Source: Orbicella franksi (Eukaryota). Taken from it: 64,000 nt of DNA. Shown here one piece after another: positions 1,009-62,930 of the stretch (the first letter of the stretch is position 1; each line of letters opens with the position of its first letter). The DNA lies in NCBI GenBank assembly GCA_964199315.1, contig OZ116709.1:11346001-11410000 (forward strand). Direction: 5' to 3'. The position numbers and the translations under genes were made by a program. Under the pieces are notes generated by a model. The model was given only the letters and a program-made list of their open reading frames with translations, was not told where the DNA came from and did no database searches.

Positions 1009-1021
1009 TTCCGGCCCCTTA
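1009..1021 (-). other. Polypurine tract (plus-strand priming site)
   Basis: Element-sense TAAGGGGCCGGAA immediately precedes the TG of the 3' LTR. Confidence 0.75.
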
Positions 1022-1191
1022 AAGGCGGTACTGCAGATAGCCTTTACAAGGAGATAGAAAAAAGGGTTTGAAACATGAGGTTGACTAAATGATAATACTA
1101 TTACTTATATTAATTGGTAGATTATATTGTATTGTTCAAGAGAGTTCTGCAATCCACTGAAACTAATGGATTGTGGGTGTTCATAAGTTCC

Positions 1192-2199
1192 TTAATTCCT
1201 TGAAACGGCGGCTGCTTCCAGTAGCACAATCTTGTCGATTGGTCGCACGAGTTCCGATGTACTGGTCTTTAACTTGACGGAACGAACCAGTCCATCTCTA
1301 CGGTTGGTATACACCTCCAGGATCCGACCGAGTGGCCAGGAGTTACGGGGCTTGTTGTCGTCAAAGACCAGGACGATGTCGTCTACTGCAAAATTCCTCC
1401 GCTGCTTGTGCCATTTCTGCCATTGCTGCAGTGACGGGAGGTATTCTCTGACCCATCGCCGCCAAAATATGTCTGCTAGATACTGCACTTGACGCCATCT
1501 CCGATTGTAGTAGTTGTCGTGGCTGGTAAAGTTTCCGGGTGGAACAGTAGGTCCTGAGCGCAGCAGCAGCAGGTGGTTGGGTGTCAGAGGTTCTAGGTCA
1601 CGTGGATCGTCTGACAGCTTTGTGATAGGTCGTCCGTTGATTATTGCCTCCACTTCACACAACAGGGTGTTGAGACCCTCATCGTCTAGCACTTGCTCTT
1701 TCATCAGTGCCTTCATGACCTTGCGTACCGTCCGTATACACCTCTCCCATACTCCGCCATGGTGAGAGCCGGCTGGTGGGTTGAAGGTCCACTTGATATT
1801 CCGTTGGAGGAGAAAGTCACGAATCTGCGATTGATTCCATTCGTTGATTGCTTCCCGTAGCTCGCGCTCTCCCCTCACGAAGTTCCCGCCGTTGTCGGAT
1901 CGCATCTCCTCAGGCTGACCTCTCCTTGCGATGAATCTGCGCAACGCGCTGATAAAGGACTCTGTGTCCAATGAGGAAGCCGCCTCTATGTGGACTGCAC
2001 GTAGGGTGAGACATGTGAATATCACGCCATACCGTTTGACCCTTGTCCTTCCGCGTCGCACTTCGAATGGCCCGAAGCAGTCTACACCTGTGTAGGTGAA
2101 CGGCGGTTTCGAAGGCGTTATTCGGTCTTCGGGAAGACTCGCCATCTTTTGTTGAGCTGTTGGCGCCTGGTGTTTACGGCAGCTGAAGCACTCGTTGAG
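1192..2199 (-). CDS. BEL/Pao integrase (CxxC of the Zn finger, DDE core, C-terminal WPLGR domain), out of frame with upstream gag-pol
   Basis: Frame reads LNECFSCRKHQAPTAQQKMASLPEDR...TGVDCFGP...SDNGGNF...GGVWER...WPLGRI. In frame with the provided ORF 1192..2145. Confidence 0.93.
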   Translation of the reverse strand, partial: LNECFSCRKHQAPTAQQKMASLPEDRITPSKPPFTYTGVDCFGPFEVRRGRTRVKRYGVIFTCLTLRAVHIEAASSLDTESFISALRRFIARRGQPEEMRSDNGGNFVRGERELREAINEWNQSQIRDFLLQRNIKWTFNPPAGSHHGGVWERCIRTVRKVMKALMKEQVLDDEGLNTLLCEVEAIINGRPITKLSDDPRDLEPLTPNHLLLLRSGPTVPPGNFTSHDNYYNRRWRQVQYLADIFWRRWVREYLPSLQQWQKWHKQRRNFAVDDIVLVFDDNKPRNSWPLGRILEVYTNRRDGLVRSVKLKTSTSELVRPIDKIVLLEAAAVSRN

Positions 2200-5100
2200 A
2201 AGATCTTCCGTTTATTATCCAGTATCTCTGCCTAGTGAGCGACAAAGTGTACTCTAGGCCCGAATGACCAGCAACGTGGTGGTAATACTGGATAAGAAGC
2301 TTGACCACGTGGTGTTTCTTTGGCAGGATAACTGGATGCCTTGCATCGGTACTGATTGGCGCTCGTTGTAAACGACCACCAACTCGTATGAGACCATGAG
2401 TTAGGATTGGGTCAAGCTTGAAAATGTTGCTAGATTTCTTCAACACGTTCTGTCTGCTAGAAGTTGTCTGTTGGTCCACTTCCTTAAGACAACCGAGTTC
2501 CTCCTTGAAGCATTTGCTCTGGACGTGCTTGAGGATTTCGAATTCAGCGTTGTTCAGTTCCGCTATGGTGATGGGCGTGGTTGTGTCGGTTGACTGAATT
2601 GGACTCGTCACTCCTCTCCTTCGTTCCTTGCTAAGACGGGTGAGGTTTGACTTGTAACGGAGTATCCACGCTACTATCTTCTTGAGATAGGTCCAGGATG
2701 AAAACCGTTCAATGATTTCTAAAACGGGATCTCGAGTAGAAGCTTCGCTCATATGTACCACCGCGTCTTTCTTGACTTCTGGGTCATCATCAGGAATGGT
2801 AACGTTCATGTCAACAGGTCGTTGTGGCCATGTCTCAGTTGACTGAGTTAGGAATTCTGGGCCATGTATCCAGCGTTGGAGAGAGTCTGCTGACGCGCCT
2901 CTTGATGCGTCGTCCGCTGGATTGAATTGTGTGTTTACGTATCGCCACTGAGAGGGAGAAGATGCGTCGTGTATCGTTGCGACCCGATTGGCAACGAAAG
3001 TCTGAAAGCGCCTGTCTTGGTTTTCTAGGTAACGCAGGACACAGGTGCTGTCTGTCCAGAAGAATGATTGACTGATCGGTAGACTCAACTCCCCTCGAGA
3101 TATTTTCTCTAGTCTTGTTGCTACAACGGCTGCTGATAACTCCAGTCGGGGAATGGTAACTGGTTTGATTGGTGCAAGTCTGGATTTTCCCATGACAAAC
3201 GAACATTTCACGTTTCCATCATGACCTGTGATTCTGAGGTATGTGACGGCTCCGTAACCCTGTTGTGACGCATCGGAGAAGTGATGAAGCTGGCACGACG
3301 TGATCTCGCCGAGGTCTGGCGACTTGAAGCAACGGTCGATTGTTAGTTGCTCTAGTTTGGGTAGCTCTTGCAGCCATACTTGCCAGCGGTGCAGGAACTC
3401 ATCTGGAATCTTGTCATCCCAGCCATACTTGTTACGACAAAGGTCTTGCAGGATCAGTTTCGCATTGAGAATAAATGGAGCGGCGAACCCCAGGGGGTCG
3501 TATACTGAGCTGATTATGGATAGTATACCTCTTCTTGTAGCAGGCCTGTCCTTAATGACAATACTAAAACCAAACTGATCGGAGGCTACGTTCCATTGTA
3601 CACCAAGAGCTCGCTCCACTGGTAACTTGTCGAAGTCGAGGTTTTTGACTTGAGCTGCTCGTTCTGACTCTGGCAAGGACTCGATGACCTTTCTTGAATT
3701 AGACAGCCATTTCGTGAGCTTGAATCCGCCTCGTGCTAGGAGCTCGCGCAGTTGTCTTGCGAGTCGAATGGCGTCATCGTCTGATCCAACTGACTTGAGG
3801 CAGTCATCGACGTAGAAATTGCGTTTCACGGTTGAAATGGTTTGGGGGTCAAAATCTGCTTTGTTGTCTTCCGCTGTTTTCTTCAGTGCGAAGTTTGCGC
3901 AGCTTGGGGAAGACGCGCCTCCAAACAGATGGACTCTCATCTGGTACTCTTCTGGCTGATTGTCGAGATTTCCGTCTGGCCACCACAGGAAACTCAGAGC
4001 CTCGCAGTCACTTGGCCGGACGCGTACCTGGTGGAACATTGCTTCCACATCAGACATTAGGGCTATTTGATCCTCTCTGAATCTGGAGAGTACACCAACA
4101 AGAGAGTTAGTCAGGTCCGGCCCCTGTAAGAGCTGGTCGTTCAGTGAGGTTCCGTAATGCTTGGCTGAACAATCGAAGACTACTCTCACTTTACCGGGTT
4201 TCTGTGGGTTGAATACGGGATGATGGGGAAGGTACCAGCGGGTTCCTAGAGGGCCAGGGTCTTGACTGTTCACTTTCCTGGCGTAATCCTTAGATAGCAG
4301 ATCGTCCATAAACCCTTTGTATTTCTGATGGACAAGTGGTTCTCTCAGCAGTCGCCTTTTCAGCTGGAGGAGTCGGCGCTCTGCTAGAGTTCTGTTGTTC
4401 TGTAGGCGTGGCGGGTAGGACTTCCAGGGTAAAGCCATTTCGTAATGACCGTTTTCTAGTTTAACTGTTTCTTCCATAATGTTCAGAGCCTTCCGGTCGT
4501 TGAGTGACATAGACGTTTTTGATTCATAGAAGGTGTCGCTAAATTCTAGGTTGCAAAACTCATGAAATTGTTCATCAAGGGTCTTGTTTCCTTGAACAAA
4601 GTTCGCAGTGGACACTTCAGTCGTGGCTGCTCTGCCCAACGGGCCGTTAAGCACCCAACCTAACACTGTTCGAGTTGCAAAGGGACCGCCATCCTCACTT
4701 GGTCTCATTTCTTTGGGTTGTAGAGCCTCCGGTACGTCGCTGCCGATTAGAAGGCCAATCTCAGTGTCTATGTGAGATATGTTGACGCCTTTCAAATATG
4801 GCCAGCGGTCGACATCCTCTTGCCGGGCGATAGCTTCAGGGGGAATAGGCAAGCTTGGCCTAGAGTAGACCTTTGGCAGCTGTACTGTCTTGTTCTCGCT
4901 TAGATCGAAAGCTTCCAAACTGACTAGGGAGCATTCAGTAGGCTCGCTTTCACCTTGCAGCGTTGTTAGTGACAGCTTCGTTTTAGTTCCCTTGAAGTTC
5001 AGCTTTTCCAAAAGGCTTTCGGTGCAAAACGACGTGTTTGAACCGGAGTCCAGGAATGCGTACGTTTCCACTATTTTACCATGACCCTTTGCCTTGACCC

Positions 5101-8303: not shown

Positions 8304-9497
8304 CAGAGTTATGCCTGGCAAACATCAAAGGAGCAAACAAAGACGCGAAGATTTATGTTGGAAGGTCCACGACAGTGCACAATCTTTTGTTTTGCGCTCA
8401 TACACTATGCATGAATTACGTAACCAACACGTTTTGATTGGTTAGTTCCTCAGTACGGAGTAAACAACTATTGTGTTTTGTGCACCGTCAAGGTCAAAAA
8501 AGTGAACAAAAACATACAACAAAGAATTTTGTTGAGTTTCATAACCATTCCCCTCTATAATTCAACAAATGCTATATATCCCTCATTGACAAAGTCACTC
8601 ATATTTATAATTATTTATCATTATTTTGTTAACCAGTGTATATGAAGATGGCCATTGATTTGACTTTAATTTGCTGAAGACTCAGCATTTGTGACAAAAT
8701 TACTACTAGCAACCACTTATTCCTCAACCTGAACCAGGTGCCAACATGAAAGCAAGGCCTACAAAAAGCCATTTCCCTTCAAACATAGTAAACAGGCCGA
8801 TGTGTTGTTCTAGAAAATAGCAGTACATGTACCTCTTCCACAGAGCATTTTCTTGATTTAGCCTCCACCATATCCCTAGGAATATATTCCAGTTTTGTTC
8901 ATTCTTTCATTTGATAATTTTGGATTGAGACTCCCCTTCCCATTGGAATTTCCAATAACCCTCCCTGGGATAGGCATGGATACTTGATGGAATGTTTTTC
9001 TTACCCCCAAGAAAACCTTTGACTGTCAATGCTGATGCACTGACTCTATCACTCACTTTAAAAACACCAGGAAAGTCTTGCTAAATAAATGGAGAGATGC
9101 CGAGGATAAGAAGGGGGTTGGGGTTGGGGTCTTCCTGATCAGATCAACCTGTCACTATTTTTTACTGACAGGTTCTCTATAGTTATGAGTTTTCAGTTTC
9201 CTATTCATGAAGGATCAGACTTAATGAGACAAAACGTTCATTAGGCGTTCCACCGTCCATTGTACCTCTCTGCACCATTCTAGTATTACATGTTCACCCC
9301 TTTGGAAAAAAAAAACAACAATTTATCTGTCGATTTCAGCTACCTCGTATATTTCCGCGATCAAAAACCGTCATGGTTGCCAGAAGGCACGAAACATCTC
9401 ATACCAGATACACCTATGCTAGCTCTCATTCCCTAAGCTTATGTGATTCAATTTACAACTACGTGCAGCACATGCAAAAACGAAAATAACAACTCAC

Positions 9498-23791: not shown

Positions 23792-26700
23792 TCAAGTTAC
23801 ATTTGGAACGACTTCGGTTTTGCTTGAAGAAAAGACGTGCTCGTACAGCAATGCAGCGATGATACCGCCTGGTATGGGTCCAACCCAGTAAACCTTAAAA
23901 AAACGGGGGAAAAGAAAAAAAAAAAAAAAAAGGCAGTGAAACGTTCATTATTCAAGAATGCGTCTTTGCACCTAAAATCGACTTCTTACAATGTTTCAAC
24001 AAGTTACCAGATAGCATTTCGCGAGCAAAATGAATCGGAAACCGGCTGATTGGTTTAAATTTTAAAAATTGGGATAAAAAGGTAAATCCAGCTTTCTTGG
24101 CTTAACACCAATTTCTGTAGCAAGAAGGGCGTAGGAATATTACTACCCCACTGGATGAGATGCTAGCTCTTTCTCTCGAGTTGCTTCAACGATTCACCTG
24201 TGCCCATATACACGCCAGGGTGGAGAGAGGCACTGTGAGAGTAAATTAGTGTCTTGCCTAAGAACGTAGAACAATGACCCCGGCAAGGACTTGAAACCTG
24301 ACCGATCGATCTGTAGTCTAAGTGCCCTAACTATTTTCTTGGCCACCTCGCTTCGCTCCCAGGGGTACGTGGACGTAAAACAGGTTCTCTCGCTTACCCA
24401 ATGATGTTTCCAAGAGTTCATGATCAGGGCGGGCCCGAATGACCGCGCGGGATTCATACTGCAGCCAGTGAAAGGAATCTTGGAATAAAAAAAAGAGTCG
24501 ATCGAAAATATTAGTCATCTTGCTACCGATTGCTAAATGTCCATGAACTGATTTTAAGGAGCTTCTTGCGCTCGTTCAATTTTAACAGAGGAATCCTAAC
24601 ATTCAGGCTAATTTCTGCATACCATGATTGGGAAGTTTGTATTCAATATAATGTACTGGTGGTTGTTTTTTTGTTTGCTTTTTCCTTTTTTTTTTTCTAA
24701 CAACGCGCGCTCTCATTGGCTACTTCGAGATCACCTAACTGTTTTCCGCCAAATGTTTCCCGAGCGGGCAACATTGCTAAATCTATGACGTCAGGGAGTA
24801 ACAGTGAACTGTTATCCGCGAATTTTGACCGACGACCACCATTGGACACCAATTCTTTAAATGTCTTCATTGTGCTGTGTAACAATATATACATTCGCGG
24901 GTAACACTGAGATTCTCGGAAAACAAAATTAACTGTTTCCCTCAGTACCAGTCTTTTTAAAGACTGGTACCGTTTTAAAAGACTAGTACTCTTTTTAAAG
25001 ACTGGTACTGTGTCAATGTTTGACATTTAAAAATGTTAAACATTGATACAGTGTGAGGTCCCTCATGTTGATAGCCTGCACACCTCAACCCTGAGTCGAG
25101 ACAAGTTTCTGCACGTACAACCAATGCCCTTCCTTCTAGGAGACAGCCGTCCAGCTATCTTAGTCCCGTGACTAAGATCTAGCGATCACAAATTTGTTCC
25201 AGCTCCTCTTTCCTCCCTTCCCCCGTCCCCTTACCTTCCCCCGTCCCCTTACCTTCCCCCGTCCCCTTACCTGCCCCCGTCCCCCTCCCTCCCCCGCAAA
25301 GTAGGTTGTTCCATTCGGTATATATTCCTTCCTTTTACTCATCAATTTCGACAATGAAGGAATCCTATTCGCGCAGTAAGCAGATTTGCGCACATTTGTG
25401 GAGGGAGAGAGAGAAGCTTCAATTACACCTTGGAATATTTTGGTTGCCTTGGTACAGTATTTCTAAGCTACTTTAACACACCTACCCCAACCATGTGACA
25501 GATGAACACACACAATCCTATGGACAGAGGTATTTCGTACCCTCGATGTTCCTTTCCAGGATCAGTCGCGGCAAAAATGGTGAAAATCAGCACAAACGTG
25601 AGAAGGAGCTCAATTCCAAAGGCCTGGGCACCATTTATCTCTTCCGCAGGTTTAGTCACTCCCAGGTCCCCGTGTAACCGAGGACTTGTCACGCCATACA
25701 AAAGCGCTGCTCCTAAAATTCCTGGTAACAAAAATACGTTTATTTCAAAGGTGGAGTTAGAAAGTGTAATTGTTTAATTGGCAGAATGTTAAACACAAAC
25801 AATGCTTAGTGAGTAGGTTCATTCCTTGGTTCGTTCGTTTCTTCGTTCGCTTCGTTGATTGTTCGTTCCTTCATTGGTTCCCTCGTTTGTTCACTCGTTC
25901 GTTCGTTTCTTGGTCGTTCGTTCTTTCGTTCGCTCCCTCGGTCGTTCGTTGGTTCGTTCGTTCCCTCGTTTGTTCACTCGTTCGTTCGTTCCTCGTTCGT
26001 TCGTTCGTTTCGTTCGTTCTTTCGTTCGCTTTTTCGGTCGCTCGTTGGTTCGTTGGTTCGTTCGTTCCCTCGCTCGTTCGTTCCTTCGTTCGCTCGCCCT
26101 CTCGTTTGTTCACTCGTTCGCCCATTTAATGATAATCTGTCTTTTACAGATCCGTATGACAGGGTAAACGTGAAGCAGTCAAAAATGTCATTCAGGTTTT
26201 CAGCCGCAAAGAACATATTTTTATCTTAACCACTCAGTGGCACGACCCTTTCAACTGTACAAACAGAACGTTTGGCAAATATGGAAGCCTCAGATATATA
26301 AAGTGTATTCCGGAAAAAAATATTTATTTTTCGTCGTTGCTGTTTGTTTTGAAAGACGGCACTGTGTATATAATTTTAGCTTGCGCTATTCGGTAGAATA
26401 CGTCTACTGGCAAGCTTTGTACATAAAGGAATCTTTTCCAAAAGCAATACCAGCCTTGAGTTGCTAGTTCACAATCCTCGATAGCAAATTGCACAGTAGA
26501 TTTGCGAAAGATACCATCCTGACAGGGTTTCAGACGCATTTCAATTGTGAAATTAAATCGCTTTTGTGAACATGTGCTTTTGCTCTGCCTCTATATATAA
26601 CTACAATCTTAAATTTTCTGTCGGTCCAAGATATTGTAAAGTTAAGAACCAATGTCAAAAAACTGTTGTAAACTGATGGGGCACTTGAAAAGTGGAACCC

Positions 26701-31100: not shown

Positions 31101-31265
31101 NNNNNNNNNNNNNNNNNNNNNNNNNNNNNNNNNNNNNNNNNNNNNNNNNNNNNNNNNNNNNNNNNNNNNNNNNNNNNNNNNNNNNNNNNNNNNNNNNNNN
31201 NNNNNNNNNNNNNNNNNNNNNNNNNNNNNNNNNNNNNNNNNNNNNNNNNNNNNNNNNNNNNNNNN
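31101..31265. other. Assembly gap (165 N)
   Basis: Run of N characters. Confidence 1.
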
Positions 31266-32434
31266 TCTGCAGCAGGTCTATAAGGACGTGAGTACGCGGA
31301 CTGAAAATTGGACAAGGTCAGAGGTCCCGATTCCTGGTGCTGATCGAAAGGATCGCGGATTCCGTGAAGGAGATTTAGAGACAACGAAGGATGGGGAAGA
31401 TAACGCCGGCAAGCACATGCGTGACAAGTGGAAGCCGCTGATTAGATTTTGCGATTGGAAGTCCATAAATAAAAAACACTACGACGATAACACACAAATG
31501 TGATTAAAGTTTTAATTCTTCACGCCATCCGTTTGTCAGTATTGTAAATATTAGTATATTAAATATGCGCAATTTACCAAATGGAAGATGGTTTTCCATG
31601 TTGTTTAACTCGAAAGAGAATATTGAACGCTTGAGGTCTAGAAAAACTCCTAATGGACACGTGAATGGAACGCAAGTGCGTTCAAAAATTTTTCTAGACC
31701 TCAAAAGTGCATTATCCTCTTTTAGAAACGTTGCATAAAAAAGCAAAAATATTTACATCTAAGAAGAGGCGGTAATTGCGTTGGCAACACAAAATCCGGA
31801 AGAAAACTGCTTTAAAATTTCCAGCCCTGCATTTATAAAAAAGAAATGGCGAATATGCAACAGCTGTATTCTAAAGGCTTCATAGTTCAGTTTTGCTTGG
31901 TTACAATCCAGTTGAAGACTCGTAGTTTTCAGGGATTTCTTTTTAACTTCCGTCTACATTGTGTAACTTATTTACAATCGAGAGGTTTATTTCAAGTCAA
32001 CTAAAAATTCATACAGAACTATCAGTGTAGAGACTGTTTCTACTTTGCGAATCACTCTTGAGAAACAATGCCAGGGCAACCATACTCTCAACAACTTGAG
32101 GCCATGTTCGTGTTCTCGCCGTAGTGGACTGGAACCAGCTTGCAATGGAGGCTTATGCGGGGGAATATTATTAAACGAAGATTAAAGTCATTTGCATTTG
32201 AAAAGATTCCCCGCCGGCATTAGCCTCAGTTGCAAGTTAGTTCCAGTCCTATACCGAGAATACGAATATGGCCTATTCCATGCTACGAAGTTTTCGTCTA
32301 CACCAAACGAACCCAGAAATCCTTGCAAGCTAACCCGTGTCCAGTCTCCCAAAAGTTTCTATATACTGAGTCTCTTTCTTCCGCTGTATACTACAAACAG
32401 TTCTGTTTTGAATTTCAAACATGTATTAAAACTA

Positions 32435-35400
32435 TTAAAAATTGGAGACAATGAACTTTGATGTATCATTCTGGTCCGTCATTTCCACAGTGTAGGTGTT
32501 ACCATTTTGTAGTGTATCAGTCTGCTTCTTTCCTTGCCCTGCAAATAACAGCTGGTAAGTGCACGTCGCCATCAGGCCGCCAGCCGTAGGAGCAATCCAG
32601 TATATCTGTTATTGAGAGAGAAAAATGAGTAGATCGTGTTAAATCACGTCCGTAAGTTTCTTCTACACCACGAGACCTAGATTGTGAAACATCGTTTTTA
32701 CGGCACTGTACTCCAATTTTTTTTGCCTCTAGCTTGAGTTACTGACTGACTGTAATATTTTTTGTCGTAGTCTCATAAGCCTGCATGTTCCAGACCACTA
32801 ATATTTTCCATTGAAAAATTTGTAACGGTCACTTTTGAATATGTATGTTGACTAGCATACAAAACGTCAAGTTCTGATTAAAATGAGCTCGAATACAATG
32901 TTTATCACCGTTGTTTGTATTATATTTTTTATCAAACTACGATGGCCTAAGAATAAGAGTTTATACGATACCGCATGTACCATCACTTCTTTGCACAGAT
33001 ATCTTACCATCGACAAAACTAATCCTTGTCTTGCAGTATTCTACGAGCACTTGATATCTGTGTTCTAACATCGTAAACCGACGCTCTATTCTACGCCAGG
33101 GATAAAACATTTGCCTTGGCGAAGCTTTCGTAGAATATCCAAAGTTGTTTTCGTGTCGCCACTGAGACGTTTTGTATCGGTATGAGTCGCTGAGCTCCAT
33201 AAAAGTATGAGACTAAATAATACTAGTGTATCTTGAATTTACTTAGTTTGGCCTCCTTTTCCAAAAAAGGTATGAAAATTCCCCCTATAAATCGTTAATA
33301 GAAACCTCTTTCAAAAGGCCAGCACGTGCCCAAAATATAACAAAAGAATACACATTCAGAAAACGATAGATTCGATAAAAGAATACCGTAAAAGACATTA
33401 GCACTAGGGTAGAAAATACCCTTGTTTGGACACGCAAATTTTGCTACCACATCATCCACAACCTGTTTTCTTACCCAATGGTCTTTCCACGAGTTCATAA
33501 TGACAGCAGGGCCGAGAGAACGAGCAGGGTTTAGGCTGGCCCCAGAAGATGGGATCTGCAATGGAAATAAATTAACAAATTCACGTCAGTTTTTTATGCG
33601 TCTGGCCTCTTATTGATGATAAATTGCGTCATAACATTGTCAAAGTGGCTGTGGAACCACGAGCAGGAGGCAAGTGGTTCCGCAGTAAACTGGTCAAGAC
33701 CCAAAACTGGTCAAATGCTGGGAATGATTGAGGGGAAAAGACGCCGTAAACTTGCCATAAACAAAGATAAGTGAATTTTATTAAAAATGTCGCGAACATT
33801 GTCAATAGCTTCTCTCATTTTTTGATTGGCTACTTAAAAAAGTCCATAAAATCTCATTGGTTAAAAAGTTGACAGTTTAACAGCTAAAAGTCAAACTTAA
33901 ATCTTGCATAAAGTAAAATTTTATTCGTCTGTACTCTTATTTATGATTAAAATGAGCCAATCACCCGCGCGAGAAATTAGGCAGTTACGGTATTGTAAAA
34001 AGAATAGTTCACAGATTCGCACATATGACTTTGCCTTTTTCCTTGCCTTCTCGTTGGAAAATGGTCCTTATATTTGTAAAGCGTTATGAAATTTCTTGTT
34101 TTAATTGCCGCTCTGAACTCAAACAAGGCATGCTATCTACATACTAATGTTTAGTTCCTACCCCATGCATGAGACAGATGAACACAGTAATTCCAATGGC
34201 CAGCGGTACCCCATAACCTGTCATGCCCCTGCTTGGGTCGGTGACCGCGAAAATCGCGAAAACCAAAATGTAAGTGAGGACTAGCTCCGTCACAAACGCC
34301 TGCGCAGTGGTGACGTCATTGGCGGGTGCTGTAACTCCTAAAGCGCCAACAGATTGGCTTGGAGTGATGCCGTAAACAATGGCTGCCCCACAGATGGCTG
34401 AAAAGGAAACAAAACATGAGCAAATTTTGTCTTTAGAGTTGAGCTTGTAGGGCAAGTCTACATACGAGCCAAGTGGCCCATCAGGCCGGCGCTTATCACC
34501 GATTTCTGTAGCATGAAGCGACTAGGACTATTTCTACTCCCCCCTGGATGGGATGCTGGTCCATCACAGGGTTACCCCCAGCATTAAACTCATTTATACA
34601 CCCGCATGGGTGGAGACAGGCTCTGTGAGAGCTACCTGTCTTGCCACCGCGCCTTCCACAGCAAAAGGTATACTCCCTTGAAAAAGAGTCATGTTAACAG
34701 TTGCGCAGCTCGGAATCTTAACATTTAATATATATCTTTGTAGTATAAGACTTGATATAAAGCTTGGCTTACCAGATCCATACCACCATTCCAAAATTTC
34801 CTTACTCTAGTATAGAGAAAGGAGAACGAATGGGAAGCGGGTTGCACGTGAGAATGCTGCCTACCAAATTGACCCATCAAAGGGCGAATATTACAAGAGA
34901 GATCATAATAGTTGATGTTGCTTGTAAGGCGTAATGGAGGAAAATGACGGTCATGTATTTTCCTCGGAAACATTCCCCGCAATAACAGATAACAACATTA
35001 GACAGTTCTTCCTGGATGCTCTCTGTCGTTTCTCTGTACATTCATGTTTTCATTTACAGTCTTGTCTGAATTTAATACCTTCTTTTGGCCGAGAGGTTAG
35101 ATAATTTAAGTAACTACTGTTTCCATGGTTTTCCCTTATATGAGATCAATCTTTAACGTTAGCGTGTTTGGTAAAAAAAAAAAAAAAAACAGGGAAAAAG
35201 AATGTACATTAAAAGAGTTAAAAAAAGACAATCTGATTGTTTTCTTTCAAAAATAACACTAATTGAGAATAAGGCTGATTGTCTAAAAATAGAGTTAGCC
35301 ACAAACTTAACTTCTATTTTCTTGTACACGTATTTCTAGTTTTAAGACAGCTTTTAATCTACTAATTTCTTCATGGGACTTCTTAAAACCAGTTATATCA

Positions 35401-36653
35401 GAGCTATGCATAACTATCTCATCGAGAACTTGAACGGCACGAATTTGTAATTCTTGACCACATATTTCATTTCATCGCTGTGGGCTCTTTTGTTTTATGC
35501 CTGAAATATTCTCCTTGGTCCAATGGGTTCGAATTGATCGTGTTAACTGTATTATCTTTTCAAGCTCTTTTATTACACTGAGCTTGCTTTTGACAAAACT
35601 TGATATACTGACTGATATTGCGTTCATAAGTGGAGGTGCTAATCTTCGTTTGGCTTTTGCAATAGTCCCAAGTCTGATGTTCCTTCCATTTCCTGACGTG
35701 AAGTGTCTCGTGTAATTGACTAAAAACAGACTTCACTCTCTCCAGAGATTTTATATTATTTTTTTACGCTTGCTTCAGGCTCGGATGGGTTTCTTGTTGC
35801 TTTTCGCCTTCATTAAGATTATTTTTAAAACGAAGCATGAAAATAACTAGTCCTGTCTTGAAGGAAAAAAAAACGATTTATTTCTCGTCCTGAAGTGAGC
35901 GTTGCGTTCCCTCTTACTTTATGTGAAAATTTCAAAACACATCATGTGTTATAGGAGTTTGTTTGCGATCCACTCTTATGTAAATATCTGAAGTAATGTG
36001 AATTGTCACGTCATTCCATTGAGTGTTGGCTTTCAATTCCGGTTTACAAGAGAAGCTTAATAAAGTGAAAACTTAATCAACTACAGCAACCTGAAATTAA
36101 GTTCACTTGTTGTTCATTAAGTATAGAAGAACTCGGCTGTAGCCTTTTAGAAATCCCGTGACTTTTTAGCTCTTTTTTAACACTCCTCCGGAAGAGGTCA
36201 GTGCTTTTACGTTTACCAAAATATATCATTCTACAACAGCCAAATGCTTTGAATCGTTAGCCAATTTCCTGAATAGCGAATTTTATATAGATCTACATTA
36301 ACTCTCTCGAGACCGAATACTATTTTCTATTTGCATAAATCCTTACCTCCCGTGCACTGCGCTATGATAAAGAAGAGAGCTTTCAACATTGAAACTCTTC
36401 CAACGGCCATCATAGAGATGGTCACGGCTGGGTTAAGCTGTCCTCCGGAAATGTGTAGAATAGACATGGCAAGAGTCGCAATGCTCAGTCCATGGCTGAA
36501 AGCGATGTGCATAACCGAAGGAGGGCTGTAGTTCCATGGTAATACAGTCCCACATACCATGAACAGGAATAAGAGTGTTGCTAAAAACTCGGCGAAGACT
36601 TCGGTCCAAAATGATCGGGAACGTAACTCCATTTTACCGTCTCGAAGAAACAT
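32435..36653 (-). CDS. AQP: Aquaporin AQP-B (264 aa; NPA/NPA; ar/R H-L-A-R)
   Basis: Exons 36653-36347, 34397-34162, 33555-33475 and 32605-32435, all GT-AG and in phase. Motifs [56 protein letters not shown] and IYWIAP. Confidence 0.93.
34445..34635 (-). mobile_element. Truncated copy of SINE family 1 in AQP-B intron 1
   Basis: Aligns by eye with 12161-12350 (CATACGAGCCAAGTGGCCCATCAGGCCGG...GTTACCCCCAGCATTAAA). Confidence 0.7.
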
Positions 36654-39600
36654 GTTTGCGTCGATCCGTGTTAATTATATGTATGGACCAAAACAAGACC
36701 GGTACTCACTGCTGTCTCAGTGTTCAAAAGTGCAGGCGATGTTTACTCAAGAGACCTTATAAAGCCCCCACAGCTACCGGCTTTCAAGGGCTAGGAACAA
36801 CCGAGAAGGACTTTCAAAGTCACACATGCTGATTGGCTAAATATTCGTCATCTTTCATTAGCCACTTGTCGTGACTTGATGTGGATGACAGACTTGAGTT
36901 TGAGACTATCTGTCATTGTTGACTAAAATTGGAGGGAGGGTCGACTGAGGGTGGAATCCGTGAGGGGAAGTGTTAGTGGGTTAATGTGCACGAGAAACTG
37001 AAAGACTTTAAAAAGTCTATCTTTGGGTTATAGGCTGGCTCATGGTCTTGTGAATACGGAAAGTTGACGAAATTCTCCGATTGGGAAAGAACTACAACTG
37101 TTTTGAGTCGCTGCACACGTCATGGATGGCACTGGATAAGCGACTCCACTCTACTCAATCAAATTTGAAAGACAATCACACTAAGTCCATTCTCCATTAT
37201 TTCAGCCCGTGGCCGGTTGCTTACGAGTCGCGACCATTCTTAGAAGCAAGCAGCTCTATTTGCGACCACGTTTTCGAATTTTCGAAGCGTTCGCTTATGA
37301 GAGCTTCGACTGTCTCATTTTTCGCGTGGCAGCCGAATGCCACCATGTGCATCGCGCAAATTAACGTTTTGAGCATAAAAGCAGTGTAACCATTAATTTC
37401 ATGTTTCTGAGAGAAAATGGCGGTCAAACGTAAACCTTAACTTTGTAGGTCCTGAAGATCTGTATGTCGAGTGGAAGAGATATAGGTCGTTTAGAATCAT
37501 TATATCCAGATGACAGAAGTGTACTAGTATGTATGAATACGACGACTTTATCATTTTTCAATGTTAATAACGGTATCAATGCAACTTTTCAGAAACTTTG
37601 ACTACATCTCCAGTAAAAGTTTGACGCACCTTGTCCGACCGAGTTCAGATAGTGAATAATACCTTCAGTTTAAAGTTGAAGCGGTGCACATCAAAGAAAG
37701 TCAACCCGAGCCGTGTAGCTGGCAACAGTTTCCAACACTTTTCAACAATTATACGTTGATTGATCACAATAGACTATGATCTAGTTGATCAGTAGCGTCA
37801 CTGTATATCAGTTGATCATACAATAATGCTATCGCGAGACCGGAATGCCAAATCATTGGTAAACTTGAAATTGTGACCATGTCGCTGAGGTTGCAGGTGA
37901 CCATGTCAACAGCATAACCTGATGAATTCAGCCTTACTCTAGCTTCATGCACTGGCTTACAGCTCAAATTTGAGCTCGGTGTTCGCCTTTTCGGAATGGC
38001 CTGATAGTTAGACTTCGGATTGCGCTATTAAGTTTCCATGCTGAATTAGACCCGTGATGGTGATGTGTCCCTGGGCAAGATACAAGATACCGGCGTCAAT
38101 TATGTTTCTCAGCTATCTGTTTTGTACACGGAGAGATCTTTGAGCTGGTGTAGTAAGATAGATCAAGGTCGTGTAATTTAAATAAAGGACTGTACTTTCA
38201 CAAACAAGAGGATTATCTTCCAGTTTCTTCGTTTGGGACAGGGAGACAAATCAGCCAAACAGGTGGCGGTTTCCCTGAATCGAATGTTAGTCCCTGTAAA
38301 ACACGACCTAAGCTTCACTGAAATTACCCTCGTGGTTTCATGCCATGGGGACCCTTCTCAAGTACTCACAAGAAAGCTATATGTCATTTGCATACGCTCT
38401 GCATTTGATCATAATTATCCTGGGATCTTGTTCAGATCCTAACTGTTTTTGTGACCCCTTCAGATACTGAATCGATCGTGACGGAAGCCGGAAATTTTAT
38501 ACAAGTAAATTTTAGTGGGTGCAAAAGAACATAACGGCTGTAGTAGTTGCAAAAGAGGTGGTCCATTAGAGTGAAGCCTTATTATTTATTTAGTGTTGGC
38601 TCTTTGGGTAATTCTGTCAATTTTTCATCCAAAAATGCAAATGTTCTTCTTTTTTCCTCAATCACTGGTAAGGACATTTTTGGGTTTCCTTTTGCAAAAA
38701 ACTCCAAAAGAGAAACGTTTTAGGTTTTCGAGATATCGGGAATAAATTATTTTGAATTTCTGTCTACTGTCCATTCAGCGTCGTCAAGTTACTGTAATTC
38801 TTAAAATTACCGCTAAACTGTCGAGGGACTGTTCTGAAAGGTCTTGAATCGCAATGTCACTCTACGACCTTTCACGCAATTGCCAATTCAATCTCAGTTT
38901 TTTCATTTTAGTATTTCATCTTTCTACGTCTTGAATTATTTTCGATGTCTTTGAAGAACCGAAACATATTATGTCGGTTTCCTCAGACGGAAAAAGGACA
39001 AGCAGTCGTTTCCTACTTTAAGAGCGACCGTTCTGGAGGAAAACTCGCCGCGCTTCGTCTTCAGTTATTTGTTGTGTTCAGAGCCGTGTTTTTTCCAGTG
39101 AGTATCTACTGTTTCAATGTCTGTAAAATGTAGATTTTCATCGACAATATAGTTGCCTGAGTCTATGCTTAGAGTTTTCTGCCAAAACATTATAAATCTA
39201 ACACTTCCGATCATAATCCCTCAGACCAGATACCGAAACGGCAAAACTGCAAAAATAGGTCCGCGGTGCGTACATGCAAGGGCATAGAATCCAAGTGGGG
39301 AGCTCATTTAATTTTGGCAACTCAAAAGAAGGGGGGTGTTAATTGGAAACGGGCTACTTTGTCAGGACAGGGTGCTCATTTCACTTGTTTGTTTATTTGT
39401 TTGTTGGTCAATTGGTGATTTTGTCTGAAATATTTGAACTGCCCAGGTTGGAAGATTGGGAATTTTCAAGCCGTAGGAAAAAGATCTATGTGCGCTAGAT
39501 AAAACCTAGCGAAGCGAAGGTCCATTGCGTAATGCCATCCTAAGTCAGGTCAATATCGAAGTGATCTCTGCGTATGTCGCAAAACAAAATATACTTGCAT

Positions 39601-40466
39601 GTTAAGAAATGACTAATGCTAAAATACTAACGAAAGAGAAAACGTACATTTGATGATTTCTCAGAGGTTTTAACAACAGCCCTTTTCTAGCTAGGACATT
39701 AAAATCTGACAAAGAGGTTATACATGGGACTGACCTGGAACAACGTAGCTGTTATAATAAAAGAATAGTTGCTTTTCTATGGCGCCAGTTCACTAATTGC
39801 CCAAGGCGCTTCGGAATAATAATGTGTAAACATAGCTGAACTGAAAAAATTTAAAGATTTGGAAAAGACGTAAGTTAAAATGTAACTGCATTTTGACTGT
39901 GAAGCTTAAGGGAAAGAGGTAAACTTTATGAGTGAAAAAGCAGTTTCTGCTCTAGAAAGCCTTACACCGTAAAACATCGGCATCTACTTGTGCAGTAATA
40001 CATGAGTACTTTAGAAGTTTTAGATAACTGAGAACGATATGGAAAACGCTATGATTAACACAACTTGCAGTGCAGCATACATCAAACCTTGGACGTAGAT
40101 TGATAGACAAAACTCGCTTCAAAATTATCATTTGATTAGTTATTTCAAGTCTTTAGGCTGATTTCGATGTCATTATCGAATTAGACATGGCAAGTGTGTG
40201 CAAATATTTCAGGTTTCTTTCGATTCCCTCCATATGCCTGTCGCCGGTAACGTCCTTTTCCGATTTCAGACCAAAATTGATCGAAAGCGTCTTCGTACAG
40301 CTTACTTTCTGTTGTAACTTTCAGATCTTTCGTGAACTTGCACATTTCATTTTAAAAATGTATTCACAGATTCCCAATGCAGTTGAATTTCTACTTGCTT
40401 TCCCGCTCCCTGTAATCCGCAACGTACCTACAAACTATATTATAATGAATTGCAATGTATCCTTAC

Positions 40467-40776
40467 CTCCCGCACTCTCCGCTGCAATAAAGAACACTGC
40501 TTTCAAGATTGAGACCCTTCCAACGGCCATCATGCAGACGGTCAAGGCTGGATTTATAAGTCCACCAGAAACGTGAAAAACTGACATGGCCAGAGTTGCA
40601 ATGCTCAGTCCACTAGTCAATGCAATGTGCATAACAGAATTTGGAGTGTTATTCCAAGTTAACCCTGTTCCACAGGCTAGAAACAGGTATAAAAGTGTAG
40701 TTAAAAATTCGGCAAAGACCTCGATCCAAAAGAAACGTGAAAGTAGATCCGTTTTTGTGCCGCAATGAAATGTCAT
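40467..40776 (-). CDS. AQP: Orphan aquaporin first exon (AQP-C; TM1-TM3 half, NPA intact): candidate alternative first exon of AQP-B, or a truncated paralogue
   Basis: ATG to phase-1 donor GGAG|gtaagg, 103 codons with no stop. About 63/91 aligned residues identical to AQP-B exon 1. No exon 2, 3 or 4-like sequence seen in 36654-40466. Confidence 0.85.
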
Positions 40777-41334
40777 GTTGTTGTATTGATGTGTGAATTG
40801 ATTCGAGTTGGAAAGAGGTATATAAGAACCTATCTAGTATCGACCCGGTCTTCGCTTCTTCAAGGGAGCGAAACGGAGACCACTGCTTTGGATGTGTGAG
40901 CAGCCTATCACCTGACAGAGCGTGCTTTGTTAATTGACCCTGGGTCTCCACGGCTAAATTAACACCTTGGGGCAAAAACGTCTTTTGAATTTACGGTGCA
41001 AATCTGTTTGATGGTGTTGCAAAAAGAATCTTGAACGGTTGTGCAAATCATTTAAGTGGCACTAGCCGACAGACGCCGAAAACGCATCAAGCCTGCAGGT
41101 ACTTGCGTTCCGCCTCCTGCAAATTCGGGCATCGATATCTCAAAAATAGCCACCGTCTACTGACCCCTAAACAATTTGGCTCAATTAGGTATCATGCTAT
41201 TCTACGCGCGACCCGCTCTCACAGTATGAACATTTCTTGCGTAACAACCCGAACAGCGATTGCTTGCTGATCATAAAATCACCCAAAGTGGCTGCAGGAG
41301 CAAGCAGACAACAACTACCGAAACAGAGCTCAGT

Positions 41335-41521
41335 AATGGGTAATTTCCGAGTTACTTTGTGCCTCTGTTTCAAAACGAGTCCTAATGCAAAACCTTTCAT
41401 ATGAAAATGGTTTAATTTGCATGAAAATGAACCTGTAGGCCAAACACATTTTCATTTGAATGGTTTCGCACGAAGTCTCGTTTTGACACATAGGAAAAAG
41501 ACAGCTCGGAAATGGCCTATT
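41335..41521. mobile_element. About 190-bp MITE; an interrupted copy lies at 62447-62917
   Basis: Imperfect TIR AATGGGTAATTTCCGAG / CTCGGAAATGGCCTATT. Second copy within the window. Confidence 0.7.
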
Positions 41522-43107
41522 TGGTACGTTTAAGTTATTACGAAAATATCCTCTTTCTGCCTTTTTTGAAACAACCATAGAGTCCCCATGAAAAACCTAT
41601 TAAGTGAGATCTTGAAAATACCGCAAACGTGCATTTGCTTTGCGTGGTTCCTGTTCTCTTGTCACGATGGTGGGCGGCCTGCATGGAGTTGATTTTGACT
41701 CCATTTCAAAAGAAATTGAAGTTTCTGCAAAACTTCTTTGAAAATGATCATACGGTGATTTTTCTCTTTCTCGAATTGGTCTCTAGATCAAGTATTTCGG
41801 GTTGGCACACCGGCTGCGGTGGAACACAACGAGGCACCACTAAACCTGACAAAAGCATTCTCTAGGGTCCTAGAGGAAGAGAAGGGGGGACCGGCGACGG
41901 ACTAACATCTGATCAAGGGGGGTAGTAGAACATCATATGTCAGAAACCGGGGCCGGGTAAGGAGGGCGATATGGACCACTTGGCCCGAATGCAACAATTT
42001 GATCGAGCGTTCTTCCCCAGGATGCCGGATGTATTTTTTTGCCTTCGGTAACTTTCTGAACGGTCACAAAGACTTGATAAACAGTTTTTACTTCAGACTA
42101 CCAAATGTGAAGACTGCGTGTAGTGGGAAATCATCATTGAATAATTAACCAAGCCTTGATTCTAGTCGTTTAGAAGGAAGCGAGAGTGCTGCAGCCGTTA
42201 TGATTATCTGTAGCTCTACCCCATTACTCAATCGTGTACTCAGCTCTAATCAATGAAGAACTCAATGCGTTTATTTTCACTGAGTTACTGACTGATCGAC
42301 CAAATTTTAGAGGAATTTTAAAATTTTCGTCTTGAGAAATCGGGTAAGTATCCTTCAAATGCATAATATAAGTCCTACAATTATATACCGTTTGATACGT
42401 AGAGTAAAATCAAAGAACAAACAAACACTGACTTTCTAAAACGACTAACAAATCTAAACTAGAACTAAGTTAGAAGTGCTCAAAACTCATCTGAAGGTTG
42501 AAAACAGCCCACTTTAAGCCTTACGGCTGTGACAAAAACGTAAAAATCTAACTACTCCTACTTGTATTGATGTAACACGCAGGACGTCATTTTTTCGCCT
42601 TAAGTTCAATAATCAATGTTCCGGAATGTATAGAAATTATAGTTATCTGGGATAATTTACATACAGTTTCTTAATCAAACAAGATTGCTTGTCGAATATT
42701 TAGTGGAAGAAAAGCAAATGATTCAACGGCCTATGAGATGCCCAAAAGTGTTGAACCAAACAAAATCTTCTTTTGATTTGTTATTCAGCAAAAAGCTTAC
42801 CACAGTTACGAATTTCTATATTTACTTCGCTAAATTTCACACTGTTCATAATGAAAGTTTTTCGATCCGCATGTACATTGAAAAATCTTTAGACCACTTT
42901 TGCGCTCGTAAAATGTCAAGCACTGACTTAGCTCTCAGCGAAAACATCGGCAGCAATGCTTGGTCATGCTTTGACAAGCTACATAAAGATAAAAAAACTA
43001 GGCTTTCAAAAAAAAGCTAAGCTAAACTCAGCACGATAACTAAACAATCTAGAGGGCAAGGTTTTTTCTTTTAAAAAAGAAGAGCGTAGCTGCAATCAGC
43101 CGACAGT

Positions 43108-48539: not shown

Positions 48540-51500
48540 TTCTGCTCGCGTTGACTGATCCGTCTGTTAATAAGCTTCCAGCTTGGCACCTCTCCGTTTG
48601 ACTATCTGGCAACGCTTCAGAGGACTTGGCATTTTATGTGTTTTGTTGATTTTTTGCGTCCGCTTTGGCTTTTGTAATGGAAATGAAGCACTAATTACGA
48701 CATCGAAGGAACTAGAACGTGATAAAAAGTTACTGAGCTTCACTCGCCTGATTTTATTGTAGTTCCGCTTTCGCTGACAATGTAAAATTCAAAAGCAAGA
48801 TGCTGTTGAAAGTGGAACGAGTATGAGCCATGGGAAACCATTGCCAAAAAAAGGGAATGAATCCATGCAAACTCCCTAATTCCCATTCAGGAGTTGTCAA
48901 AATGTAATTTCTCCTTCCAGTATTAATCAACTGTTAAACAGACAGGTGACAAGAACAAAGACTAACTGATAACAAACAAGAGGGCATTGTTGTCCTATGC
49001 CATCAAATGTTCACGGCTGACATGTGGAGTAGCCTTCAAGGACGACGAGACGTCCACGCGCACGGTAAAGAAGGCTGCATTCACCAGCCGTGGTAAATTG
49101 ATATTTCAGGAATGTCACTAATGGGTTCAGACACGCTTGCCTAGCGTAAGCTTAGAGCTTGTTAAGTCTAACTAATTGCATAAGGTATTTCCATTGTTCA
49201 GTGCCAGAACACCATATGCAAACTTAGCTTTACACCATTTCAAACTACGAGTTCCGGCCACAAAATGGTTCCGAAACGTCGACGGGAATGTGTCAAGAAA
49301 TATAGGTTTGCATGCGACGTCATCGGTGCCGTGTTGCATTGACGGCAAATGACAAAAGACTTCTATTTTACTTCTCTTCTCATTTATTATTCATAAACGT
49401 TACTTTGCTGCCACGATTTGTCATTTTGGTTCCAAAACAGGAATATTTTGTATAAAGTACTTTGGCTCTCTCTTACCACCTGCCTTGTTCTATGATTGAC
49501 AAATGAAACGAGACTGGCCTAGGTTCTGCAAACAGTGCCTGTTTGTTCATCTTTGTGTTGATTTTTGTGTTGCTTGGCCAACTGGGTCAACACAAGCTAC
49601 TTTGGTAGATTGAGGCAACTATGGCAAACAATTCTAAATGGCAATAGATTTTGGCCACCTCTCTGGCAAAAAAACAGCCAGGTAGATTTAATTAAAGATT
49701 TACTGTTACAAAAAAGCTGCAGCTGGTGGTGTCTATTTATTTTTCTTTGTTAGGAGACATTAGCACTACCAGGTTACTCCGAAATTTGAATGAAAATGAA
49801 GTTATGTTTGTATGTAGGTATGTCTCTGTACGGTGGTTTTATAACAAAGAAATAGTGTAAATAGCTCACGGATTTAATGGAGATGATGGCATCAGTAGCC
49901 TTACTGGATTTTAGAGGAGTGTGTTTGTCATTCATCCAACGATCTTAAAAGCATAGGTGCTTCATTCTTTACACACGTTTTCGAAAACGCTATTTTAACT
50001 CCAAGGTTTTTTTTTTTTTGTTTGGGCGAAAAAGTCCAATTTGGGCGAACACCAGATTCCACAGGAATGACCCAGTCCACCACAATTGCTGTAACAGTGA
50101 TGACGGTCTTAATCTTGTTTTGAGTTGATCCTTATCGGTTTGAAACCGTTCTCCCATAACGCTTAGATTTACTGGCTTTCTCACGGAGACCAGCTTACTT
50201 ATCCATACAAATGCAGTGCTTTCAGTGTGTATGTCTCCCATGATAATATTGCCGTTGATGCGAAGAATCTTCCAGTCACGATGCTCTGGCACACAGGATT
50301 GACATAGAAAATGCGATCAAGGCAGCAATCCAAATATCAGTCCAAATAATACATTTTTATATATAGGCCAGTTACCAAGCCATTCATAACTTTGAGTGAC
50401 AACCGGTCATCAGGCTGTTTCCAACTTAATATTGAAGAGTGTTTTGTCTAACTAACGTCTTGCAATGTCCGAAGCCAAAATAAATATGTAATTACTGACA
50501 ACAGTGCCAATTTAATGAATACCTGAAAAGTGTGATGCAATAAATGTCAAGTTCATCTCACATATAGACCTTACTCCCACGGTAATCCCTCTCAAGTTAT
50601 TTTTAGGTATAACATTCAGTCCTTTCCCCGGCTGATAATATTTCCATACGCACTGCGTAGATCTGTTTTATGGAGGATAAGAATGCGTGTTAAGCCACTT
50701 GGGCTGTACACTTGAGAAACATTCGCTTCGAAGGATTGGTTACTTTGAGGTCCTTTCAAGATTTTTTTAAGCTGGAAGTGATCTGAGAACGGTTTGAGGG
50801 GGATTCATTTAGGAGTAGGGGTGACATGTGGAATTTACTTCCTTACCTTCCATTCCGGCTCGCTTGGCCAAGAAAGGTCATACTAGACAACAACACAATC
50901 CAGAGCTGCCGAATACGTTCAGTATTTATTTGTTTCAGCTAGAAATTCCTTTCATCAACACCGCCTCAAGCTGGCCGAGTTCCTTATTAGTTAACGATCC
51001 AAGCCGTCCTATTGCTGCAGGTACTTTCAGATTCTGCCAACTCCAAGTTAGTCTCATCCAAGATCATTTCACTATTTGTAGTTTAGTTGGCAGCGAACGA
51101 AAGGCTGACTAATTGTTCCAAAGATGGAAGCAGAAATAAGAGATACGAGATTTTATTAATACTGAACAGGTTGCATGCATGCATGCATGTGGTACATGTC
51201 TGGAAAGAAGATGGCTCGTCGATCGCACACTGACAATAGAATTTGTTTTGAGTTTTGTTCTGAATATCAAGTGCATGCTAAAGCCCTGACCAAAACTGAA
51301 AAAAACTTGCAAGAATGTTAAGGCCCACCTAAGATTCACTTTTCAAAACGTATTCACTCAACTACAATGCTGCTTTTGCAGACGTTCAGGTCTATTTTCT
51401 CTAAACATTTGCAACGCTTCAAGTCCTTCACATCCGAGCCACGCCTGTGGCTCTTGGTCAACCGGTGGTTTCGAGCATATGGTATACAAGGATGTATCAA

Positions 51501-62252: not shown

Positions 62253-62930
62253 TGCATTACTACACTACACGATTGGCCTAAAAATGCTCGCGGCACTTTT
62301 TCATTTAATCAGAAGTAAAACTAAAACCAATCATGACTCGCTTAGGTACGCGTCAGTTTCATGTAATTGCTTCGAGTTTTGATTGGTTTACTGGGTTTTC
62401 TTTGCCCTTTGTGATTGGTTAGAGTGATTACTTTGGTTTGATTCAAGGGACCGTGTGGACCTTGTGCCTCCGTTTCAAAACGAGTCTTCGTGCAAAACCT
62501 CTCATATTTAAGCAATAGAACACCGTGTTTACATAGCGTCATCTAAACACGAGGAGGGTTCGGAGAATTCGAGACAGTTATGCAAACCCTCGACTACGTT
62601 TCGAGAACTCCCCCAACCCGCGAGTGTTTAGATGAGGCTATGTAAACATGGAAAAAGTGCTCTATTGATTTTATAAAAGTAATTCTCAAAAATACGCGCG
62701 AATCTAAAACGTCACAACGGTGTTTACGTACTCTCATCTAAACACACCTATCGACCAATGAGAGCGCGTGTAGTAGCTCAGTTATTTTATAAATGAAAAT
62801 GAGTCTGATTTTCATGAAAAAACCTCTTGGCGGAACATGTTTTCATATGAATGGTGACGCACGAAGACTACTATAGTTTTGATACAGAGGTAAAAGACAA
62901 CTCGGAAATGGCCTATTGAAAACCACTCTA
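62253..62930. mobile_element. Nested repeat cluster (element inside MITE, probably inside an older repeat)
   Basis: A copy of the 41335-41521 MITE is split at about 62506/62793 by a roughly 285-bp insert that contains its own hairpin (62513-62668). Confidence 0.6.

Follow-up and report, generated by a model that had tools for sequence, protein, structure and literature searches.

Can a single aquaporin (AQP) gene encode two different channels by exchanging half of its pore? The question is raised by a stretch of 64,000 nucleotides (nt) from the coral Orbicella franksi (assembly GCA_964199315.1, contig OZ116709.1, positions 11,346,001 to 11,410,000; hereafter the window, in which all coordinates are given), where a lone aquaporin first exon, exon C, lies upstream of the complete gene AQP-B. 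A preliminary description of this DNA had proposed that exon C is spliced in frame to exon 2 of AQP-B to give a channel of 265 amino acids (aa), and exactly this junction and this product occur in messenger RNA (mRNA) contigs. The AQP-B locus is, with high confidence, a single gene in which two homologous first exons lie in tandem and share exons 2-4. Its parts are as follows, including the untranslated regions (UTRs), the transmembrane helices (TM1 to TM6) and the asparagine-proline-alanine (NPA) motifs.

40777..41002, minus strand: 5'UTR of exon C and upstream region (contig mapping, eight-sequence alignment)
40776-40467, minus strand: coding part of exon C, the lone first exon (translation, Pfam, donor, contigs L011/L012)
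34398..40466, minus strand: intron of 6069 nt excised from the C-type mRNA, holding the entire exon 1 of B (L011 junction, mapping)
36347..37240, minus strand: first exon B in mRNA L013, with coding sequence 36653-36347 (mapping)
34162..34397, minus strand: shared exon 2, with TM4, TM5 and the helix-5 filter Leu (mapping, product alignment)
33475..33555, minus strand: shared exon 3, with loop E carrying the filter Ala, the second NPA and the filter Arg (mapping, product alignment)
32238..32605, minus strand: shared exon 4, with TM6 and the C-terminus, including 3'UTR (mapping, product alignment)

Transcripts of the Two Types

Two mRNA contigs from different archives, L011 (Logan SRR6255822) and L012 (JGI 3300008039), are 100% identical over 913 nt and map to the window in four blocks (40849/40856-40467, 34399-34162, 33556-33472 and 32606-32238) at 97.6-99.5% identity. 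The C-type junction in L011 reads GGAG|CCATCTG, corresponding to 40467|34397. The B-type mRNA, L013, comprises 37240-36347 followed by the same three downstream blocks, and its 5'UTR runs contiguously for at least 587 nt upstream of the coding sequence of B exon 1. The first 22 nt of this contig (L013:1-22) do not align to the window and are presumably an Illumina adapter; the 5' end at 37240 would then be a library fragment end and not a mapped transcription start.

The products built from the window are complete aquaporins of 265 aa (C-type) and 264 aa (B-type) and are identical from residue 104/103 onward; they lie 2-3 residues from the transcript proteins P0243 and P0237 and one residue from P0281, respectively. 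Because the window holds a single set of exons 2-4 serving both products, these exons are common to C and B. The coding part of exon 4 occupies 32605-32435, with the stop codon TAA at 32437-32435 and 3'UTR seen down to 32238. Over exons 2-4 and the 3'UTR, only allelic differences separate the C-type from the B-type mRNAs, with some 9 mismatches in approximately 680 nt as estimated by subtraction.

Full-length, intron-less C-type proteins exist in three sequence types, namely the Orbicella type (P0237/P0243, 265 aa) and two others of 264 aa (P0196/P0238) and 263 aa (P0241/P0244), which presumably come from other species. Except for allelic changes, P0241/P0244 and the B-type mRNA P0177 have exons 2-4 in common, and the C-type mRNA of a relative (L010) reaches the equivalent of window position 41002. 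Spliced contigs on record number about eight for the C-type and about ten for the B-type. No protein carrying both the C and B first exons was found among the database matches, the mRNAs holding one or the other. Splicing of exon C to exon 2 of the next gene, AQP-A (40467-to-25721), which had also been raised, was rejected as a candidate, no such protein being present among the matches and the full-length C-type proteins all carrying B exons 2-4.

An Intact First Exon Standing Alone

Exon C consists of 103 stop-free codons plus one base. It begins with an ATG, encodes TM1-TM3 and the loop-B NPA, and matches the Pfam MIP family at an E value of 6e-20, bearing out its earlier portrayal as an intact exon without stop or frameshift. 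Its donor, GGAG|gtaagga at 40467/40466, is in phase 1, and the donor of B exon 1 at 36347/36346 has the same context and the same phase, also as first described. The coding lengths are 310 nt for exon C and 307 nt for exon B. At the DNA level, the two exons are 75% identical over 297 nt, with the similarity ending at the exon borders and none in the flanks, so the duplication is presumably old. At the protein level, identity is 68.7% over 99 residues, and the approximately 31/99 differences come close to the 28/91 initially estimated. Most of these differences are conservative, and the residues differing most between C and B are the first 12.

No aquaporin exons 2-4 were detected between 36654 and 40466 at E<1 in a tblastn search with exons 2-4 of three neighbouring AQP genes (word size 2, E up to 10, listed to E<1). 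Likewise, when 36700-43000 was compared with the window by blastn, only exon 1 matched, and no remnants of exons 2-4 belonging to C were found. The sole run of N in the window (31101-31265) lies outside the interval between the C and B first exons. The preliminary description was thus correct that the interval contains neither an exon 2, 3 or 4 nor an assembly gap.

Upstream of exon C, about 560-750 nt from its ATG, lies a self-inverted repeat of 188 nt (41335-41521) resembling a miniature inverted-repeat transposable element. Related copies occur at 62459-62507 and 62793-62917, and the C-type mRNA of a relative has another in its 3'UTR (L010:1162-1232).

Conservation and Purifying Selection

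A search with exon C recovered orthologous exons in other corals at 83-90% identity, called as open reading frames (ORFs) that run into the intron and therefore representing genomic DNA. The order of AQP-D, C exon 1 and B recurs in related corals, where the preliminary description had suggested looking for it. Specifically, B exon 1 is the next AQP exon after C exon 1 in four other coral assemblies (L001; L004, a 562-kb ENA contig; L005; and a 33-kb ERZ26168041 contig), and exon 4 of D lies directly upstream of C exon 1 in L001 and L004. The DNA of L004, L001 and L005 is collinear throughout. Identity to the relatives is 89-93% at the nucleotide level for C exon 1 and 91-94% for B exon 1, as against approximately 74-80% for flanking non-coding DNA. 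The ATG, reading frame, NPA and donor are kept in all seven C orthologues, the donor being identical.

The ratio of nonsynonymous to synonymous substitution rates (dN/dS) was estimated by the method of Nei and Gojobori (NG86) with a custom script and compared with 1 by a one-sided Fisher test. For orthologues of C exon 1, values range from 0.08 to 0.39 and are significantly below 1 in every pair (p<0.05 in 15/15 pairs, mostly p<1e-3), as had been anticipated for a functional exon. For orthologues of B exon 1, the range is 0.04-0.14. Between the B and C paralogues, dN is 0.18-0.21 and dS approximately 1.0 (saturated), for a ratio of about 0.2.

Pore Residues and Predicted Fold

Alignment to AQP4 structures with HMMER places the four residues of the selectivity filter at S55, L179, A188 and R194 in the C isoform and at H54, L178, A187 and R193 in the B isoform. 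This alignment is unambiguous around GLSIATL and the second NPA, and the contrast initially suggested between an S-L-A-R filter in C and an H-L-A-R filter in B holds. In a comparison of 11 C-type with 27 B-type exons (38 sequences), ten positions show fixed differences. The type-specific residues (C/B) include Ser55/His at the helix-2 filter position, Leu73-Ile74 versus Gln-Leu/Met right before the first NPA, and Leu78/Val right after it. Another is Tyr30/Phe in TM1 (Phe29 in B), a site that we take to correspond to the presumably pore-lining Phe24 of AQP1 and treat as a lead only.

Both proteins are well matched by Pfam PF00230 (MIP), at 208 bits for P0243 (C) and 231 bits for P0281 (B) with a cutoff of 25, and both possess two NPA motifs and the Arg (C: N75-P-A, N191-P-A and R194; B: N74, N190 and R193). 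An AlphaFold2 model of the C isoform has a mean predicted local distance difference test (pLDDT) score of 83.6, with most 10-residue core blocks above 90. It superimposes on human AQP4 (3GD8) with a template modelling score (TM-score) by target of 0.94 and a root-mean-square deviation of 1.4 A, and its top Foldseek matches are AQP5, AQP2 and AQP4 (TM-score by target 0.86-0.94). The C isoform is therefore confidently predicted to be a complete aquaporin.

Neither isoform has the classical water filter of AQP1/2/4/5 (an aromatic residue in helix 2, His in helix 5, a small residue and Arg), as helix 2 contributes Ser (C) or His (B) and helix 5 contributes Leu; all the same, the backbone is nearest to the AQP1/2/4/5 group. 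By sequence, both isoforms are closest to AQP4/AQP5/AQP2 (E about 1e-54 to 1e-50, versus 2e-27 for TIP2;1). The AQP8/TIP filter pattern is matched by the B isoform only, and sequence matches do not support membership of the AQP8/TIP clade. In AQP8 and AtTIP2;1, the helix-2 His hydrogen-bonds the filter Arg (PMC5816522).

A Model for the Locus

Under the proposed model, a transcript starting at C, with B exon 1 lying 4.1 kb downstream, would remove B exon 1 inside the 6.07-kb intron, and a transcript starting upstream of B exon 1 would yield the B isoform. Each first exon has an ATG and a donor, neither has been seen with an upstream acceptor, and each 5'UTR is collinear with the genomic DNA preceding its exon. 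The C reading frame stops 10 codons into the intron. A B transcript must begin downstream of C exon 1, because the C frame would otherwise come first. Each first exon presumably has a promoter of its own.

That the two isoforms differ in what they conduct is plausible, with chances that we would put near even. A broader and more tentative proposal, to which we give somewhat less than even weight, is that stony corals possess a swappable half-pore cassette by which one gene could supply two channels of different solute selectivity through first-exon choice. The His-containing filter of B, resembling that of AQP8 and TIP2, which let ammonia and H2O2 pass, would plausibly suit NH3 or H2O2, and C would present a His-less filter with Ser, allowing regulated tuning of small-solute flux, for example in connection with symbionts or calcifying tissue.

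Weighing the Evidence

Several observations weigh against the reading of exon C as a functional alternative first exon that alters selectivity. Although we regard the gene model as very probably right, the RNA origin of the Logan and JGI contigs that support it is deduced from their lack of introns. Each contig starts at a fragment end, so dedicated promoters are something that we infer. The TATA-like motif noted previously about 45 nt upstream of exon C is indeed present, as TATATA at 40823-40818, but it lies within the transcribed 5'UTR (Orbicella-type C mRNAs reach 40849 and 40856) and is not conserved among relatives in an eight-sequence alignment, so it is unsupported as a core promoter. 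C exon 1 is somewhat less constrained than B exon 1, its dN being approximately 1.2-3 times higher in the same species pairs. At codon 51 of C (40624-40626, minus strand), the window encodes Ile51, whereas Thr51 is found in RefSeq isoform X1 and in every transcript protein of the Orbicella type, probably reflecting a polymorphism or an individual or assembly difference. Finally, the proposed change in selectivity is based on homology to other aquaporins.

It is conceivable that exon C is the leftover stump of a truncated duplicate and that its splicing to B exon 2 is functionless noise, and the facts that C lacks exons 2-4 of its own and has a dN somewhat above that of B exon 1 would fit such a history. 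However, the intact ORF, ATG, NPA and donor in seven orthologues, with dN/dS well below 1, are not expected of a stump, nor are exon identity far above that of the flanking DNA and in-frame spliced mRNAs in three sequence types at numbers similar to B. Because of the conserved layout, the excess of exon over flank identity, the kept signals, the low dN/dS and the record numbers near those of B, a dead stump or splicing noise is very unlikely. An assembly artefact, in which a collapsed or mis-joined tandem duplicate hides exons 2-4 of C, would be in keeping with the susceptibility of tandem arrays to collapse and with the N run in the window. The probability of such an artefact is nonetheless close to nil, as four independently assembled coral genomes besides this one show the same order on continuous, collinear DNA, the interval from one first exon to the other is free of gaps, and the C- and B-type mRNAs differ only allelically in their common part.

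The most serious rival accepts the alternative first exon as real and assigns it a role in regulation or trafficking, in which two promoters and two N-termini would supply different cell types or membranes, with both isoforms passing the same solutes and the pore-adjacent changes representing tolerated drift. Such subfunctionalisation would be in line with the concentration of C/B differences in the first 12 residues and with their mostly conservative nature. It would also accord with known aquaporin splice variants, whose differences lie in the cytosolic termini and have been linked in discussion to tissue expression and trafficking (PMC5513457, where the cytosolic change is stated for C-terminal variants and N-terminal ones are only named). 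Against it stand the ten differences fixed across the 38 sequences, among them the filter residue of helix 2 and residues flanking the first NPA on either side; within a functional subgroup of aquaporins, such positions are as a rule conserved (PMC5816522). On balance, purely regulatory subfunctionalisation is unlikely, yet it retains real weight.

Age and Breadth of the Arrangement

In a tree of exon 1 sequences, the C clade is sister to all B-type exons, including those of Montipora, Pocillopora, Stylophora and Oculina, with support of 93/92. Approximately unbiased (AU) tests rejected neither the grouping of C with its nearest B exons, which would mean a younger origin (p 0.24), nor that of C with the Acropora type (p 0.44). 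Tree and tests alike rest on 95 columns and do not fix the age of the duplication.

The genus Acropora presents a variant arrangement. In proteins of A. palmata, A. muricata and A. cervicornis (P0186, P0282 and P0296), the gene at the B position has an exon 1 with the Ser filter residue and the TM1 Tyr, like C, joined to its own diverged exons 2-4, for a filter of S-L-A-R. On contig L016, an Acropora-type exon (8429-8734) follows directly after a D-type gene (947-5078), which is the syntenic place of exon C. This Ser-type exon may be an orthologue of C or a product of convergence, either being compatible with the AU test (p 0.44). The Acropora-type contigs end approximately 1 kb after the exon. 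In the long pocilloporid RefSeq models (509 and 540 aa, fusions of B and A), no C-type exon was found, a result that says nothing on its presence in the genomes.

The Aquaporin Array and its Annotation

The AQP genes D, C (exon 1 alone), B and A form a tandem array on the minus strand, as judged by tblastn over the whole window. The two outer genes are the following.

48527-48222 (exon 1) through 43245-43111 (exon 4), minus strand: AQP-D (tblastn)
29441-29139 (exon 1) through near 23893-23819 (exon 4), minus strand: AQP-A (tblastn)

A weak aquaporin match on the plus strand at 49926-50108 (28% identity, E 0.015-0.05, without an NPA) was taken as chance. Within intron 1 of AQP-A, at 25770-26229, overlapping long ORFs on both strands encode short peptide repeats that resemble SFVRS on one strand and ERTNE on the other, indicating a tandem DNA repeat inside that intron.

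The isoform pair already exists as an automatic annotation in a congener. In XP_020632414.1 (aquaporin-5-like isoform X1 [Orbicella faveolata]), exons 2 and 3 of B follow C exon 1. Its partner XP_020632415.1 (isoform X2) belongs to the B-type and is 100% identical over exon 1 to the AQP-B product. Both models (P0202 and P0030) skip the donor of exon 3 at 33475, continue into intron 3 (33475-33295, minus strand) and end in an unrelated tail, at 268 and 267 aa, without TM6. L011-L013, by comparison, splice 33475 to 32605, and their products of 265 and 264 aa have a conserved TM6; the 3' ends of both RefSeq models are in error. Full-text searches turned up no paper in which pore-forming segments of an aquaporin are exchanged through first exons or homologous exons. 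The earlier statement that the arrangement was undescribed thus holds for the searched literature but must be qualified by the existence of the RefSeq pair.

Annotations in other corals are probably affected as well. Three RefSeq entries named "uncharacterized protein", of 509-540 aa, consist of a B-type (or Acropora-type) aquaporin fused end-to-end with the next gene of the array, of A-type: P0249 (Stylophora, XP_022790732.1), P0264 (Pocillopora, XP_027060272.1) and P0282 (Acropora, XP_074635810.1). These are likely read-through mis-annotations of tandem genes.

Significance

With the choice of first exon, TM1-TM3 are swapped together with the half-helix of the first NPA and a single one of the four filter residues. 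The locus is thereby a natural experiment on how the N-terminal half-pore sets selectivity, and it offers two closely matched natural constructs (265/264 aa) for transport assays. Ammonia, peroxide or water may be handled in an isoform-specific way in this reef-building coral, and expression studies that are blind to the isoforms pool two different channels.

Comparison with Known Systems

The closest parallels in gene architecture are UGT1A and the clustered protocadherins. There, as here, each of the tandem paralogous first exons supplies a complete N-terminal module, starts with an ATG of its own, has a 5' donor as its only splice site and is joined to shared constant exons; when an upstream first exon is used, the downstream one is removed as part of the intron. 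The coral locus differs in having just two variable exons, in that promoter choice would be the presumed means of selection, and in that the segment that varies forms half of a membrane pore rather than a substrate-binding or adhesion ectodomain.

Tandem homologous exon substitutions, such as SNAP25 exon 5 and the mutually exclusive exons of ion channels (PMC9741552, PMC8373072), are similar in another respect. These also involve adjacent homologous exons of the same phase and near-equal length that are old, under purifying selection and never found together in one mRNA, and their isoforms are identical save for the homologous segment. Unlike mutually exclusive exons, the coral pair are first exons, and their exclusivity would derive from the start of transcription and the missing acceptor rather than from competing internal splice sites.

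To our knowledge, known aquaporin splice variants alter the cytosolic N- or C-termini and not the pore. The M1 and M23 forms of AQP4 are a further known pair of aquaporin variants. As at the coral locus, one gene can give rise to several proteins via alternative 5' or 3' exons, and examples include the C-terminal splice variants of barnacle and Anopheles AQP1 and the N-terminal variants of salmon-louse Glps, the latter named only (PMC5513457). The coral swap differs from these in extending to TM1-TM3, to loop B and the first NPA in it, and to one filter residue.

With respect to the filter, the "aquaammoniaporin" pattern of AQP8 and plant TIP2 comprises His in helix 2, Ile in helix 5, Gly in loop E and Arg (PMC5816522). 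The B isoform has the same residue types (His, Leu, Ala, Arg) at the four positions compared, and the C isoform has Ser in place of the helix-2 His. The arrangement thus combines known kinds, variable first exons and tandem homologous exon substitution, in a well-known protein family.

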